A DNA stretch of 64,000 bases, taken from positions 140,830 to 204,829 of the IMG/VR virus record IMGVR_UViG_3300024502_000010; one strand, given 5' to 3'. Position numbers and translations under genes: made by a program. The notes beneath the pieces are model-generated. The model saw only the letters and a list, made by a program, of their open reading frames with translations, did no database searches and was not told the DNA's origin. Below, in pieces: positions 3,217-23,914 of the stretch (its first letter is position 1; every line of letters begins with the position of its first letter).

Positions 3217-4470
3217 TCAAGTTCCCTCACACCAAGAGTTAATATATTTCTCTTGTTCCTCAGTGAGTTTATCAATCGAAATTCCCATTGCAGAAAGTTT
3301 AAGTTCTGCAATTTCCGCATCCTTTTCTGCAGGAACGGGATAAACACCAGGAGCAAGTTTACCTTGATTCTGAACAAGATATTCTACAGCAAGTGCCTGA
3401 TTTGCAAAACTCATATCCATCACAGCAGAAGGGTGTCCTTCAGCAGCGCCAAGATTTACGAGGCGACCATCTGCAATTACCACAACTTCATTATGTTGAA
3501 GTTTGTACTGCTTAACAAAAGGACGAACCTCTTTAATTTCTGTTGCTTTTTCTTCCAGAGATTTCACATCAATCTCATTATCAAAGTGACCAGAGTTGCA
3601 AACAATAGCACCACTACGCATCCACTTCATATGGTCATAAGCAATAACATTTTTATTGCCAGTCACAGTAATGAAAATATCACCAAGAATCGCTGCCTGA
3701 ACCATAGGCATCACTCTATAACCTTCCAGAGTTGCTTCAATTGCTTTTACTGGATCAATCTCAGTAACAATCACATTTGCACCCATACCCTTAGCACGGA
3801 GAGCAACACCCTTACCACACCAACCAAATCCAGCAACAACTACAGTCTTACCAGCAAGAAGAATGTTGGTAGCACGAATAATACCATCCAGAGTTGATTG
3901 ACCAGTACCATAACGATTATCAAAGAAGTGCTTAGTCTGAGAATCGTTTACATTGATTGCAGGATGCTTGAGCACTCCATCATTAATCATTGCTTGGAGA
4001 CGAACAATACCAGTAGTAGTTTCTTCTGTAGTTCCAATCAAATCAGCAATCTGTTCTGGGCGTTCCTTAATTAAAGTTGCTACAACATCAGATCCATCGT
4101 CAATAATAATATTAGGACGATGATCGAGAGCGGTATTAATATGTCTAATATAAGTGTCACTATCTTCTCCTTTGATTGCAAATACGGGGATGTCCCAATA
4201 CTTTACAAGAGCAGCAGCAACATCATCCTGAGTAGAAAGTGGATTACTTGCAATCAGCATAGAATCTGCACCAGCATTTTTAAGTGCAATACAAAGGTGT
4301 GCAGTTTCTGTTGTAACGTGATTGCAAGAGACTAAACGTACTCCCTCAAGTGGTTTTTCTTTTGCAAATCTTTCTTGAATTTGTTTAAGAACAGGCATCT
4401 CTCTTCCTGCCCATTCAATTCGTTGTTTGCCAAGTTCGGCAAGGTTAATATCTTTAATATCGTATTTCAT
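3217..4470 (-). CDS. ahcY: Adenosylhomocysteinase (SAH hydrolase)
   Basis: [60 protein letters not shown]. Confidence 0.97.
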
Positions 4471-4482
4471 AAATCTCCATAG

Positions 4483-4506
4483 AAAAGGAGGGGTTTTATC
4501 CCCTCC
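4483..4506 (-). terminator. Intrinsic terminator after porin gene
   Basis: GGAGGGG-ATAAAA-CCCCTCC-TTTTCT. Confidence 0.8.
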
Positions 4507-4528
4507 ATGTTATCACACTTTCAGTTTA

Positions 4529-6025
4529 TCAGAAAGTAAATTTGGTTTGGATTACACCACCAAAGTTGGAAGAAGCATCAGTGAATGCTTGGTTGTTAGA
4601 AGCATAGAACACTGCAGGAGTAATAGTAATGTTATCGCTTACACGATACTTGTAGAATACTTCCCACATCGTTGCATCCTCATCCAGTCCTTCTGCATTA
4701 CCAGGTTGACCCACAGCAAAACCTGCAGAATTACCCTTGGCAAGTACATCACTCCACTGAAGACCAGCATACCAAGTTTGAGAATCGGTAGCACCAGCAG
4801 GAGTTGCTGCACCTTCAGCATTCAGACTTACAGTGTTCCAACCATAACCAGCAGATACCGAGGGAACAATGCCAGACTTAGAGGGTTGCCAGTAAGCACT
4901 CAGAGCATAACCGTTGGAGGTTTGACCTGGAGCAAGAGCACCAGAAGCACCAGCAACACCATTAAAGGTGCGAACACGAGTGCCTTCAGTACCATAACGA
5001 TAACCGAATGCAATACCGTAGTTAGGAGCACGATAACCAATCTGTGCCAGAGTGTTCAGGGCACCCTTTTCGTTGAACTCACCTTTGGTGGAATCGCCAC
5101 CATTTTGAGCAACATAGTTCAGACCAGCAACAAAACCTTTCTTACCTTGTGACCACTGGGCACCAAAACCAGCACCAGTTGCCTTGTTATAGACGCCAGG
5201 AGCACCAGCAAGTTGGAAGAAGTCAAGAACTTCCGACTTATATGCAGTAGGAATCCAGGTCATTTCAGTGTTACGAACCAGAGCACCAGCAGTCAGAGTT
5301 ACACCCTTAGCAAGTGCAGGGAACTGATAGTAGAGACGGTCGAGAGTAACTGCATTTGCGGTACTCTCTGCCTTATCCAGTTTGAACAGAGAAGAAGAAG
5401 AACCGAAGGGTTGACTGGAGAAGTTGCCAGAACGCAGACGAGTGCGGAGCAGATCTTTACCAGTGAACGATGTGTCAAAGTTCAGGCGAAGATCATAGTT
5501 GAATGCAGTATTACCAACATTCGTACTTGCAGTTGAACCGGGAGTCCAAGCATTATCTACACCACCAAGAACAAAGTTTGCTTCACCGCGAAGTTTTGTG
5601 GTGGTAGAGAACTGAGTTGCTTCAAGAGCACCTACTTTGGTTTCCAAACTTGCAACCTTACCTTGAATAACAGTGAGTTCATCACGGAACTCATTAGCAA
5701 GACGCTTGAGTTCATCAGTATTTTCTGTTACGCGATCCAAGCAAGCATTCAGAAGTGCTGCTGCCTCATAGCGAGTCATTGCTTTGCCACCACTGAAGGT
5801 GCCATTTGGATAACCAGCAACGCAACCATAACGCTCTACAAGGTTGCTGAGTGCCTGATATGCCCAATCCGTAGGTTGAACATCAGACAGTTGTGAGACG
5901 CTTGTGACCTGCTCAGAGGTTGCATATTGGTTGACTGCTGCCATGTTAAGGTCTGCCGCATTCGCAGCAACAGGAGCAACCATTCCCAGAGCAACAGGTG
6001 CAAGCATCAGTTGTTTGAGTTTCAT
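4529..6025 (-). CDS. Cyanobacterial SLH-domain outer-membrane porin (Som/OprB type)
   Basis: Signal peptide, SDVQPTDWAYQAL...TRYEAAA SLH domain, QFSTTTKLRGE, C-terminal F. Confidence 0.95.
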   Translation of the reverse strand: MKLKQLMLAPVALGMVAPVAANAADLNMAAVNQYATSEQVTSVSQLSDVQPTDWAYQALSNLVERYGCVAGYPNGTFSGGKAMTRYEAAALLNACLDRVTENTDELKRLANEFRDELTVIQGKVASLETKVGALEATQFSTTTKLRGEANFVLGGVDNAWTPGSTASTNVGNTAFNYDLRLNFDTSFTGKDLLRTRLRSGNFSSQPFGSSSSLFKLDKAESTANAVTLDRLYYQFPALAKGVTLTAGALVRNTEMTWIPTAYKSEVLDFFQLAGAPGVYNKATGAGFGAQWSQGKKGFVAGLNYVAQNGGDSTKGEFNEKGALNTLAQIGYRAPNYGIAFGYRYGTEGTRVRTFNGVAGASGALAPGQTSNGYALSAYWQPSKSGIVPSVSAGYGWNTVSLNAEGAATPAGATDSQTWYAGLQWSDVLAKGNSAGFAVGQPGNAEGLDEDATMWEVFYKYRVSDNITITPAVFYASNNQAFTDASSNFGGVIQTKFTF

Positions 6026-6055
6026 AAAATTATTTTTTATGTACTATAGGACAAA

Positions 6056-6122
6056 TGTTAAGAATTACAACTGAATTCTTAAGTACTTATTTAGTATAGA
6101 GAGATTCTTAAATTTTGTCAAG
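6056..6122 (-). promoter_or_regulatory. Porin promoter with downstream palindrome
   Basis: TTGACA-17-TATACT overlapping late-type CTAAATA; TTAAGAATT-7-AATTCTTAA inverted repeat. Confidence 0.65.
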
Positions 6123-22600: not shown

Positions 22601-23696
22601 CTTTCACCTCTTCCACCTTTTTCATTTGCGTATTAATCCACTCATAAGTCTTGCGGATACCTTCTTCCAGAGTCTGTGAATAATCCCAACCAAGTTTTTC
22701 GCGAATCAAATCATTATTTGAATTGCGTCCACGAACTCCAAGAGGACCATCAATATGATTCTTCTCTACGACTTTACCTGCAACTTTAGCAGCAGTATCT
22801 ACGAGTTGATTAATGGTTACCATTTCTTCGGAACCAATATTAACAGGTCCGATGAAATCACTATTCATCATTCTGCGGGTTGCTTCGATGCATTCATCAA
22901 TATACAGGAAGGAACGAGTTTGTAGCCCGTCTCCCCACACCTCGATGGTTCCACCTTCCTCTGAAAGGTAGGCAACTTTACGACAGATTGCTGCGGGTGC
23001 TTTTTCTCTACCACCAGTCCAGGTTCCTTCAGGTCCAAAGATATTATGATACCTAGCAACCCGCACAGGAATACCATAGTTGCGGTGATAAGCGAAGAAG
23101 AGTCTCTCTGAGAAGAGTTTTTCCCAACCATACTCGGAATCTGGGTTAGCAGGATAAGCGGACTCTTCACGACAATCGGGATTGTCTGGATCTAATTGAT
23201 TATGTTCTGGATACATACAAGCAGATCCAGAATAGAAAATTTTAGTTTTATAATCTAATACTGGGCGAACACAAGCGGTGCCATTATCAACACCATCAAA
23301 AGTTTCATTCAATTGACGCTGTGCTTCAAGAACATTTAAGTTGATGGTTGCAGAGTTGTGCATAATATCAGCATCATTTTCTCCAGTGAAAACAAATCCT
23401 GCACCGCCCATATCAGCAGCGAACTGATAGATTTCATGGAAGGGTAGAATATATCGATAAGGAACTGAGTTATAAAAGTTTCCTTGCTCTCCTTTAAATT
23501 CAAGAACACGGCGAACAAAGTTCATATCCCTCAGGTCTCCCTGAATGAATTCATCTGCTTCAGAAATTGAAAATTCTGGATACTTGAGGTCTACACCACG
23601 CACCCAATAACCTTCAGACTTTAATCTTCTTACCATATGACTTCCAATAAAGCCACCAGCACCTAACACAAGTGCCGTTTTCTTGTACTCACTCAT
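22584..23696 (-). CDS. GDP-mannose 3,5-epimerase-like SDR (WcaG family)
   Basis: GAGGFIG, AADMGG, SACMYPE, YGWEK, HNIFGPEGTWTGGREKAPAAICRK; start MSEYKK at 23696. Confidence 0.85.
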   Translation of the reverse strand: MSEYKKTALVLGAGGFIGSHMVRRLKSEGYWVRGVDLKYPEFSISEADEFIQGDLRDMNFVRRVLEFKGEQGNFYNSVPYRYILPFHEIYQFAADMGGAGFVFTGENDADIMHNSATINLNVLEAQRQLNETFDGVDNGTACVRPVLDYKTKIFYSGSACMYPEHNQLDPDNPDCREESAYPANPDSEYGWEKLFSERLFFAYHRNYGIPVRVARYHNIFGPEGTWTGGREKAPAAICRKVAYLSEEGGTIEVWGDGLQTRSFLYIDECIEATRRMMNSDFIGPVNIGSEEMVTINQLVDTAAKVAGKVVEKNHIDGPLGVRGRNSNNDLIREKLGWDYSQTLEEGIRKTYEWINTQMKKVEEVKGDSKE

Positions 23697-23722
23697 AGAC
23701 CAATAAATTTCTCTTAGTATAT

Positions 23723-23760
23723 AGTATACAAAAAAAGAGGAGTTTATGCAACTCCTCTTA
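23723..23760 (-). terminator. Intrinsic terminator with overlapping sigma70-like promoter
   Basis: AGAGGAGTT-gcata-AACTCCTCT-TTTTTT; TTGCAT-17-TATACT. Confidence 0.7.
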
Positions 23761-23764
23761 TGTA

Positions 23765-23856
23765 ACTCAGGCTCGCCACTTGCCCTTTGACTGGAGGCAA
23801 GAAACCAGGCGGGAGAGAGTCCCATCCGCACCAATTGCCCTTGAGAGAGGCAATAA
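23765..23856 (-). ncRNA. wcaG-like structured RNA
   Basis: Multi-hairpin leader with two UGGYG motifs (UGGUG, UGGCG) directly upstream of a WcaG-family gene in a cyanophage; recognised from memory of the motif, no covariance search run. Confidence 0.65.
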
Positions 23857-23864
23857 ACTCATAA

Positions 23865-23914
23865 TAGGGTCATTTTGACTCCACCAGTATAAGTTTTAAG
23901 TCGTTCCAGGACTA
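23865..23914 (-). repeat. Structured module copy B (possibly manA-RNA-like)
   Basis: AGTCCTGGAACGACTTAAAA-cttata-CTGGT followed by hairpin GGAGTC-AAAAT-GACCC. Confidence 0.45.

Follow-up and report, generated by a model that had tools for sequence, protein, structure and literature searches.

Introduction

Clusters of lipopolysaccharide (LPS)-like genes in large T4-like cyanophages were described in 2010, when their function was left open and the possibility that they are “stuffer DNA” was raised (PMC3037559), and the target usually suggested for them is the host envelope (PMC9602691). The stretch of DNA considered here, positions 140,830 to 204,829 of the IMG/VR virus record IMGVR_UViG_3300024502_000010 (64,000 nucleotides at the end of a viral record of 204,829 bp with a GC content of 36.7%, and hereafter the window), holds a glycan island of this class, which contains a gene for a nicotinamide adenine dinucleotide (NAD) synthetase, NadE, and has ahcY, the gene for S-adenosylhomocysteine (SAH) hydrolase, just beyond its edge. 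In common with the clusters of S-SSM7, P-SSM2, S-SM2 and S-SCSM1, it lies near hli, PstS and tRNA genes, shares the core of epimerases, GT11, GT25, Ugd and NadE (48–82% identity), and is without export machinery; it differs from them in being larger, in its lineage-specific GT17, GT47-like, GT61, DUF5672 and GT2 genes and four to five methyltransferases, none of which the six isolate loci compared possess, and in having ahcY and a porin gene at its edge (PMC3037559, PMC9602691). The island is a methyltransferase-rich variant of the known class, in which NadE keeps the company of one particular enzyme, a nucleotide-sugar dehydrogenase of the Ugd type, and AhcY follows a distribution of its own.

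A second point of comparison is the glycosylation of virions by virus-encoded enzymes. Chlorovirus capsid glycans reportedly contain methylated sugars, and the virions of some mycobacteriophages are said to be glycosylated. These cytoplasmic systems share with the present island many small soluble glycosyltransferases of eukaryote-like families, methyltransferases and sugar-nucleotide enzymes, as well as the absence of lipid-carrier or export genes, and the Atlas neighbours of two island proteins come from Nucleocytoviricota. In the island, by contrast, the host envelope is as possible an acceptor as the virion proteins.

The phage itself is a large uncultured T4-like cyanomyovirus, and the region is its hypervariable glycan (“LPS-like”) island. 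The markers are a tRNA array, a 2-oxoglutarate (2OG)-Fe(II) oxygenase, 6-phosphogluconate dehydrogenase, PstS, ferredoxin and peroxiredoxin, together with a gp41-type helicase, a RecA-like UvsX and MazG, and similarity to the closest cultured relatives is limited to short stretches of 75–77% nucleotide identity. CheckV rates the 204.8-kb record as 78% complete and a 284,050-bp IMG/VR record with an identical island region as 100% complete; the latter, a record of the same phage, would place it among the largest cyanomyoviruses.

NadE Travels with a Nucleotide-Sugar Dehydrogenase

The surroundings of viral NadE were examined in 80 IMG/VR contigs, of which those with enough downstream sequence are informative. 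A Ugd homologue follows downstream on the same strand in 77, and fewer than 800 bp are left beyond NadE in each of the three remaining contigs. The two genes are adjacent in 63 cases, separated by one gene in 10 and by two genes in four (three of these four being copies of the present phage). Of 61 distinct pairs, 49 show a 4-nt overlap between the stop codon of NadE and the start of Ugd. All six isolate genomes examined (S-SSM7, Bellamy, P-TIM68, Sf-FS3, S-SCSM2R and HTVC008M) carry nadE in a glycan island immediately upstream of Ugd, Bellamy having one methyltransferase gene between the two. Around the closest cellular relatives of NadE, by comparison, neither a Ugd homologue nor any other island gene was found within 8 kb at any of 80 loci. 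A preliminary description of this DNA had asked how nadE and glycosyltransferase islands co-occur across phages, and its expectation is borne out by this contrast between 77 of 77 informative viral contigs, with nadE in the island ahead of Ugd, and 0 of 80 cellular loci: nadE is no random passenger.

Seen from the dehydrogenase, the relationship is looser. NadE lies nearby in 67 of 80 viral contigs with Ugd relatives, and among those with enough upstream sequence to be informative, Ugds of at least 55% identity are accompanied by NadE in 55 and unaccompanied in one, while for more distant Ugds the figures are 12 and eight. The NadE tree records no fewer than five changes in the type of dehydrogenase with the adjacency kept, the window and Bellamy types being 26% identical and HTVC008M having a third type; since the partner switches while the adjacency persists, the adjacency is maintained through recombination. 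A sister phage (L126/L127, with an AhcY 88% identical) retains the island frame but has its NadE–glycosyltransferase–methyltransferase–Ugd block replaced by a cassette of a GHMP kinase, an unknown gene, a nucleotidyltransferase and a short-chain dehydrogenase/reductase (SDR). Because these four genes are exchanged as a block, NadE comes and goes with Ugd and not with the SDR enzymes.

NadE thus follows Ugd, as opposed to the SDR enzymes or the island in general. No such rule is described in the cyanophage literature searched, and as far as that search extends the pairing of viral NadE with Ugd is new. Both genes are under purifying selection, with dN/dS between phage copies of 0.11–0.16 for NadE and about 0.15 for Ugd, and the “stuffer DNA” explanation is ruled out for NadE, Ugd and AhcY by values of 0.06–0.16 across the three.

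Identity and Origin of NadE and Ugd

The phage NadE passes its family models (PF02540 in Table 1; TIGR00552, 179.2 bits against 63.65), and its best PDB match is the short Francisella enzyme 3fiu (129.5 bits). It shares fold family, PP-loop and conserved motifs with the single-domain NadE of E. coli and B. subtilis and with the Francisella nicotinamide mononucleotide (NMN) synthetase variant, and it has the short form of about 250 aa seen in 3fiu and in archaeal enzymes (PMC3376133). It differs from the cellular single-domain enzymes in being virus-encoded and in standing upstream of a sugar dehydrogenase, a pairing absent from the 80 cellular loci. When 126 phage and 78 cellular NadEs are aligned, 79 columns show one and the same conserved residue in both sets. 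The segments SGGIDS (the PP-loop SGGxDS), GTGNKVED, FYTKYGDGG and HKM are invariant in the phage copies; the PP-loop, FYTKYGDGG and the C-terminal HKM are segments that presumably line the site for nicotinic acid adenine dinucleotide (NaAD) in the B. subtilis enzyme. The fixed differences between phage and cellular proteins are conservative, and no one substitution consistently distinguishes the phage clade as a whole. In all likelihood, then, the protein is a true NAD (or NMN) synthetase of the ammonia-dependent kind.

Cyanobacteria use a two-domain, glutamine-dependent NAD synthetase (PMC3376133), and because the hosts have this enzyme, the phage NadE is not host-derived. The closest cellular relatives, 45–55% identical, belong to Flavobacteriia, Poseidoniales and Pelagibacterales. 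Among the 120 matches listed for a protein search with NadE, in which the scored candidates were limited to 8,000, all with E ≤ 1e-20, there are only close phage relatives, and in 50,697 phage records close homologues were confined to cyanophages and the pelagiphage HTVC008M. On the NadE tree all 66 cyanophage sequences form one clade on a long stem (SH-aLRT, the Shimodaira–Hasegawa-like likelihood ratio support, 100) beside Pelagibacterales. The free tree suggests an independent capture by HTVC008M from a SAR11-like host; the approximately unbiased (AU) test does not reject one viral clade (p 0.35), and separate capture is not claimed.

Ugd reaches TIGR03026 (201.1 bits, cut-off 189.8), and its catalytic-cysteine motif GGPC(L)PRDN is invariant in 61 phage copies. 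It falls far below the cut-offs of its best equivalog models (AglM, 155.6 against 670; TuaD, 126.3 against 700). The protein is accordingly placed in the nucleotide-sugar dehydrogenase subfamily, and a specific assignment as UDP-glucose 6-dehydrogenase would go beyond these scores.

A Mosaic Island for Building and Methylating Glycans

The island is made up of 21 co-directional open reading frames (ORFs) on the minus strand, running from the ATG at 23696 down to 6118 with intergenic gaps of −34 to +18 nt (Table 1). It encodes three SDR sugar-nucleotide enzymes, about 11 glycosyltransferase-like proteins, four to five methyltransferases, NadE and the Ugd-type dehydrogenase. Its genes have a GC content of 0.29–0.37, against 0.39–0.47 in the flanking porin, AhcY and PstS genes. 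Every element listed in the preliminary description was recovered on the minus strand at its expected place by Pfam, cmscan and Atlas searches; the tight coupling it described holds as well, with 21 genes in place of about 18. Its three to four GT11 genes resolve into two strong and one weak Pfam match plus one GT11-like fold, and its GT47 gene is backed by Atlas neighbours with RXYLT1_C/Exostosin_GT47 (score 0.97–0.99), the Pfam match to RXYLT1_C being weak. Taken together, the gene content and arrangement support the view, already put forward in that description, that this is a coherent and selected unit for building and methylating glycans and not a random cluster.

Table 1. Features of the glycan island and its downstream edge, in the order in which the minus strand is read (positions in the window).
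Feature	Position (strand)	Evidence and remarks
wcaG RNA motif RF01761, island leader	23765..23862 (-)	cmscan 102.9 bits, gathering score 42; model positions 1-98 of 98
Intrinsic-terminator-like hairpin	23727..23759 (-)	10-bp stem + U-run; between wcaG RNA and ATG 23696; candidate expression platform
SDR1, GDP-mannose 3,5-epimerase homologue	22584..23696 (-)	ORF open to 23834; Pfam Epimerase/GDP_Man_Dehyd
FkbM-family methyltransferase	21857..22600 (-)	PF05050, 40.6 bits
SDR2, divergent NAD-dependent epimerase/dehydratase	21009..21860 (-)	PF01370, 87.6 bits; PDB matches weak
SDR3, GalE-like nucleotide-sugar 4-epimerase	20020..21012 (-)	PF01370, 158 bits; UDP-glucose 4-epimerase 4zrm, 143.9 bits
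Methyltransf_24 / O-methyltransferase-like	19348..20019 (-)	PF13578, 36.2 bits; PF01596, 27.7 bits
GT17-family glycosyltransferase	18507..19361 (-)	PF04724, 89.2 bits
Exostosin/GT47-like (RXYLT1_C-like) glycosyltransferase	17584..18516 (-)	PF24785, 23.1 bits, below cut-off
Methyltransf_24 methyltransferase	16987..17583 (-)	PF13578, 53.1 bits
Divergent GT11-like glycosyltransferase	16040..16984 (-)	weak PF01531; phrog_2644 glycosyltransferase, 76 bits
GT61-family glycosyltransferase	14963..16036 (-)	PF04577, 76.5 bits
Probable class I S-adenosylmethionine (SAM)-dependent methyltransferase (lead only)	14422..14961 (-)	no Pfam match
DUF5672 protein	13699..14403 (-)	PF18922, 66.6 bits
GT11 glycosyltransferase	12902..13702 (-)	PF01531, 79.8 bits
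GT2 glycosyltransferase	12147..12917 (-)	PF00535, 46.2 bits
Conserved phage protein, galactosyltransferase-like	11342..12157 (-)	phrog_15655, 390.7 bits; phrog_1721 galactosyl transferase, 26 bits
GT11 glycosyltransferase	10498..11355 (-)	PF01531, 84.8 bits; 65-69% orthologues in three isolates
NadE, single-domain (ammonia-type) NAD synthetase	9743..10501 (-)	PF02540, 163 bits (cut-off 21)
GT11-like-fold protein between NadE and methyltransferase/Ugd genes	8851..9735 (-)	no Pfam, NCBIfam or PHROG match
Class I SAM-dependent methyltransferase inside NadE-Ugd cassette	8081..8854 (-)	PF13847, PF13489, PF08242 and related, 52-57 bits
Ugd-type nucleotide-sugar 6-dehydrogenase	6930..8114 (-)	ATG probably 8084; PF03721 + PF00984
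GT25 glycosyltransferase, final island gene	6118..6933 (-)	PF01755, 52.5 bits
Sigma-70-like promoter match before porin gene	6093..6121 (-)	TTGACA-17-TATACT, 11/12; consensus match only
SLH/OprB-type porin, host-like, outside glycan pathway	4529..6025 (-)	PF04966 + PF00395; GC 0.468
Terminator-like hairpin between porin gene and ahcY	4487..4506 (-)	7-bp stem, 6 GC pairs, T-run; consensus match only
AhcY, SAH hydrolase, cyanobacterial type	3217..4470 (-)	PF05221, 221.6 bits; PF00670, 188.2 bits

The first enzyme, SDR1, scores 281.7 bits to GDP-mannose 3′,5′-epimerase (PDB 2c59; residues 10–367 against 34–350), with the next fold family at 83 bits or less; it is a full-length homologue of that enzyme, and GDP-mannose 3,5-epimerase activity is predicted for it. 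Orthologues 70–82% identical are present in S-SSM7, P-TIM68, S-SCSM2R and Sf-FS3, the same four phages that carry orthologues of the galactosyltransferase-like ORF 11342–12157, and SDR2 has orthologues (67–70%) in three isolates. The class I methyltransferase between NadE and Ugd has a 68% orthologue in the same position in Bellamy, and GT25 orthologues (64–71%) end the islands of Bellamy, S-SCSM2R, Sf-FS3 and S-SSM7. For two ORFs the assignment comes from Atlas comparisons: the nearest clusters to ORF 14422–14961 are viral class I methyltransferases (feature score 0.95–0.96), and an Atlas structure search gives ORF 8851–9735 a TM score of 0.64–0.69 to GT11-containing viral proteins.

Core orthologues occur in S-SSM7, P-TIM68, S-SCSM2R, Sf-FS3 and, in part, Bellamy, at 37–82% identity, and comprise the epimerase, SDR2, the GT11 genes, the galactosyltransferase-like protein, NadE, Ugd and GT25. 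Identities of about 53–82% apply to NadE, the epimerase, SDR2 and GT25 and lower ones to Ugd and the galactosyltransferase-like protein, and four isolates have core genes at 60–82%. The FkbM, Methyltransf_24, GT17, GT47-like, GT61, DUF5672 and GT2 genes and ORF 8851–9735 have no counterpart in the isolate stretches compared. The island is therefore a mosaic of a shared S-SSM7-like core and lineage-specific inserts (GT17, GT47-like, GT61, DUF5672, GT2 and the extra methyltransferases).

The wcaG RNA Leader

The wcaG motif RF01761 was described ahead of nucleotide-sugar enzyme genes in cyanophages (Weinberg et al. 2010, PMC2864571), and the instance at the head of this island is a strong, full-length match in the same setting. 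It stands, as had been claimed, at the head of the unit, the first gene starting downstream of both the RNA and a terminator-like hairpin. That hairpin was found by a consensus scan and is present in the minimum free energy and centroid folds. Such a hairpin lies 12–16 nt downstream in eight of nine distinct wcaG instances within the loci covered (the window, L117, L135, L136, L202, L231, L235 and L240), with at least four different, mutually compensating stem sequences, and the next gene is usually an orthologue of the epimerase; in Sf-FS3 and S-SCSM2R, wcaG directly precedes a 2OG-Fe(II) oxygenase gene, which in turn precedes the epimerase.

Two differences from the published motif can be noted: the main text of the original description does not mention a terminator hairpin for wcaG, whereas one is found here and at seven other loci, and the downstream gene here encodes a GDP-mannose 3,5-epimerase homologue, not WcaG/Fcl (PMC2864571). 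The covarying terminator behind wcaG is new as far as the literature was searched. The arrangement of RNA and hairpin suggests the layout of a transcription-attenuating riboswitch with a conserved terminator as its candidate expression platform. The consensus scan detected no strong promoter-like site immediately ahead of the RNA, the closest ones being at about 25.3–25.5 kb, and promoter and terminator calls throughout are consensus matches only. In P-TIM68, a manA RNA (a strong match, 176.9 bits) is found about 5 kb upstream of the NadE–Ugd island, with a small ORF annotated “NAD synthetase” on one side and talC on the other.

AhcY, the Porin and the Edge of the Island

Beyond the GT25 gene come the porin gene and then ahcY, which is, as had been observed, two genes downstream of the island. 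The AhcY protein scores 683 bits to PDB 7o5l over residues 2–417, far above other solved SAH hydrolases; 7o5l is the Synechocystis enzyme. Its dN/dS is 0.06–0.10. There is no PHROG family for AhcY, and no credible match in 50,697 GenBank phage records, the three matches obtained looking like bacterial contamination, yet 39 IMG/VR contigs carry it, at no fewer than three genomic sites. In about 14 it follows GT25, with or without the porin, and precedes PstS, as in the window (in two contigs, GT25 is directly followed by AhcY); in about 13 (L093–L095, L098, L101, L107–L112, L115–L116) it lies between the gp41 helicase and MazG, a hotspot that corresponds to window positions 47633–49424 on the minus strand and differs from the site used in this phage; and in two it occupies a third site.

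These distributions bear directly on the claim that ahcY is a co-inherited part of the island, which does not hold. No AhcY match was found in the nadE-bearing isolates S-SSM7, Bellamy, P-TIM68, Sf-FS3, S-SCSM2R and HTVC008M; AhcY occurs with islands that lack NadE and Ugd, as in the sister phage; and in a 172-kb record that bears AhcY no GT11, Methyltransf_24 or NadE gene was detected. A 175-kb record has an island with neither NadE nor Ugd. The two “cofactor” genes, nadE and ahcY, are thus distributed independently of each other. AhcY resembles the host-derived auxiliary genes of cyanophages such as psbA, pstS and talC in that, like the porin and PstS, it is host-like in sequence or composition, sits in a variable region and is individually mobile; it differs from them in having no credible GenBank phage match or PHROG family in spite of its ~39 IMG/VR contigs. 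By its sequence and distribution AhcY is a functional, mobile auxiliary gene of host type that does not belong to the conserved glycan unit, and within the literature searched a mobile AhcY in cyanophages is new. Any phage methyltransferase may plausibly benefit from it, the products of the five methyltransferase-like genes here among them.

The porin is full-length, has a signal-peptide-like N-terminus, and is 76% identical to a porin of the freshwater phage S-SRM01, where the context is different. The 92-nt gap between island and porin gene holds the promoter-like match of Table 1. In four riverine metatranscriptomes, contigs identical to the window bridge the junctions over 3217–9200, both flanks of the porin included, these contigs being assemblies from libraries in which DNA may be present and not a demonstration of single transcripts. 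They break only inside the porin gene (4966–5194 and 5658–5770), where depth is raised, as if this part of the porin were shared with other abundant sequences.

Elsewhere in the window, nine tRNA genes lie within 2.5 kb (28125–30603, minus strand), close to an HNH endonuclease gene (28973–29509) and a ferritin/Dps-like gene (28487–28948), and one more tRNA gene is at 46058–46129 on the minus strand. A second low-GC stretch of the record (0.30–0.33; 15–40 kb, within 13000–44000) was considered as a further glycan island and rejected: it contains giant ORFs of 2,242 and 2,523 aa, which are probably structural or fibre proteins.

Functions Supplied by the Phage and Functions Missing

None of the 21 island proteins has a membrane-spanning segment. 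Neither an initiating phosphoglycosyl transferase (PF02397) nor a Wzx-type flippase (PF01943) was matched in the 204.8-kb record or in the complete 284-kb record, and the latter, rated 100% complete, has no SAM synthetase (MetK). On this evidence the island is not a bacterial O-antigen or capsule locus of the Wzx/Wzy- or ABC-dependent kind, a comparison made with PF02397 and PF01943 only, PF00953, Wzy and the ABC families not having been searched. Because the phage supplies donors, glycosyltransferases and methyltransferases but not initiation, export or SAM, the earlier term “self-supplying” is too strong.

Partners for NadE were likewise sought. No NAPRTase or NadV-type gene is present in the genome, and a candidate NMN adenylyltransferase was set aside as a weak CTP_transf_like match (20 bits) without Pfam or PDB support. 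This protein, the “cytidyltransferase” of 433 aa at 43992–45293 on the minus strand, is conserved in 567 phage records with or without NadE and so is not linked to it; that of S-SCSM1 is annotated as an adenylyltransferase for NMN or nicotinic acid mononucleotide and has been reported in the virion proteome (PMC9602691). In two-subunit NAD synthetases, ammonia comes from nitrilase-like subunits (PMC3376133). ORF 11342–12157 was rejected as a glutaminase partner: its Sf-FS3 orthologue is the galactosyltransferase-like gene and not a carbon–nitrogen (CN) hydrolase. Sf-FS3 does have a CN-hydrolase (nitrilase-family) gene (L006, 14773–15633), two genes downstream of NadE–Ugd, to which the window has no counterpart.

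A Proposed Mechanism and Its Alternatives

The explanation we favour is that of a gated mosaic glycan island in which NadE supplies NAD(H) for Ugd and AhcY is a separate acquisition, and as a whole we would give it a probability of roughly 55%. Taking anatomy, linkages and selection as observed, and drawing the mechanism from family membership, we envision that transcription entering from upstream would be gated at the wcaG RNA and its terminator. The epimerase would convert host GDP-mannose into either GDP-L-galactose or GDP-L-gulose, which the GT11-type “fucosyltransferases” could transfer; Ugd would turn a host UDP-hexose into a uronic acid, and the GalE-like SDR would epimerise a further donor. 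About 11 soluble glycosyltransferases and four to five methyltransferases may then assemble an O-methylated oligosaccharide in the cytoplasm, on an acceptor that could come from the host (a lipid-linked or envelope precursor) or from the phage (virion proteins). NadE is genetically tied to Ugd, probably by translational coupling. Ugd alone among the island enzymes is predicted to turn over NAD+ in its free form (two per sugar), and the likeliest role of NadE would be to raise the supply of NAD(H) for this step, the host’s own NAD synthetase being glutamine-dependent. AhcY would have been acquired separately and have landed at the boundary between island and PstS, where its removal of SAH may relieve SAH inhibition generally.

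Several observations weigh against this explanation. There is no direct evidence that NAD+ limits Ugd during infection, and more NAD by itself would leave the NAD+/NADH ratio unfixed. The acceptor, the sugars and the sites of methylation are predicted solely from family membership. NadE falls below the full-length equivalog cut-offs (PRK13980, 182.7 against 255; PRK00768, 118.4 against 250), and the lineage of the window has S63 and Y74 where cellular NadEs (96–97%) and other phage isolates have Q and H. A complex prediction for NadE and Ugd from 61-row paired alignments scored 0.00, which gives no answer and is evidence neither way. Shuffled sequence yields at least as many promoter-like matches as the region does. 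Given the single cyanophage clade, the passing down of one ancestral cassette could account for part of the linkage. Lastly, a NadE that never occurs without Ugd, with overlapping codons, is what would be expected of consecutive steps in one pathway, and this fits a rival as well.

That rival holds that the phage NadE is a recruited sugar amidotransferase: Ugd would make a C6 carboxylate, which NadE would adenylate and combine with ammonia, giving a nucleotide-linked uronamide for the glycosyltransferases. NadE chemistry, the conversion of a carboxylate to a carboxamide via an adenylate, is what the uronamide step needs. The pairing fits too, since NadE is never without Ugd in the 77 informative contigs, with stop/start overlap the rule, and Ugd without NadE does occur (9 of 76 informative contigs, and the genome record G001); the two genes are acquired and lost together as one block, and their adjacency survives the swap to the very different Bellamy-type dehydrogenase; no cellular NadE locus has the pairing, and the protein falls short of the equivalog models, whose match leaves out the C-terminal ~30 residues. 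Against amidation, the phage proteins remain as close as 45–55% to housekeeping-type NadEs of three phyla, the 79 conserved columns, with PP-loop, FYTKYGDGG and the C-terminal HK motif among them, are kept, and no substitution sets the phage clade apart. Known uronamide-forming enzymes are asparagine-synthetase-like, and we know of no NadE-type precedent. We regard this recruitment as unlikely, and it is doubtful to much the same degree that the phage clade as such is not, or not only, an NAD synthetase but a new sugar amidotransferase converting the uronic acid of Ugd to a uronamide.

The model of the preliminary description, a single co-transcribed, self-supplying unit from the wcaG leader through ahcY in which NadE and AhcY are dedicated cofactor parts, is improbable, although it has points in its favour. 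Five methyltransferase-like genes would produce SAH, ahcY lies only 1.6 kb past the last glycosyltransferase gene on the same strand, about 14 contigs keep the order GT25–(porin)–AhcY–PstS, and metatranscriptome contigs bridge every junction between 3217 and 9200. These contigs are not proof of single transcripts, however, and between island and ahcY stand the porin gene, promoter-like and terminator-like sites and a jump in GC. AhcY is moreover found at the gp41–MazG site (~13 contigs) and at another (two), with islands that have neither NadE nor Ugd, and in the 172-kb record devoid of GT11, Methyltransf_24 and NadE, while isolates that do bear NadE are without it.

It is also quite improbable that the NadE–Ugd adjacency is historical, one ancestral cassette having been inherited and shuffled as a unit with NadE giving a general NAD boost or none. 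The single long-stemmed clade of 66 cyanophage sequences would be expected on this account, a single viral origin including HTVC008M is not rejected by the AU test, and the swap in L126 moves four genes together. The islands are otherwise highly mosaic, though, and yet the arrangement is kept in every informative contig, through five or more changes of partner type and with zero to two genes inserted, both genes remaining under purifying selection. A counter-defence role unrelated to the glycan, in which NadE would rebuild NAD+ after NAD+-depleting host immunity, is very improbable: its product is NAD+, and KVP40 and other phages reportedly carry NAD+ salvage or reconstitution genes, but its substrate NaAD is not a breakdown product of NAD+-cleaving defences, no NAPRTase/NadV-type partner accompanies it, and the strict, fusion-like pairing with Ugd would be left unexplained.

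Implications

Under either of the two functions considered for it, the NadE–Ugd rule implies that phages tune a host cofactor pool for one auxiliary enzyme or turn NadE chemistry onto a sugar. Were the amidation reading true, marine and estuarine cyanophages would widely carry NadE–Ugd as a cassette of two steps, “oxidise then amidate”. The combination of wcaG RNA and covarying terminator in front of a gene for a GDP-mannose 3,5-epimerase narrows the search for a ligand to sugar-nucleotides or related metabolites, and a mobile AhcY in uncultured cyanomyoviruses suggests that methylation capacity can limit infection. At least 22 riverine metatranscriptome runs contain the phage at 100% identity, an abundance which indicates that this biology is environmentally relevant.

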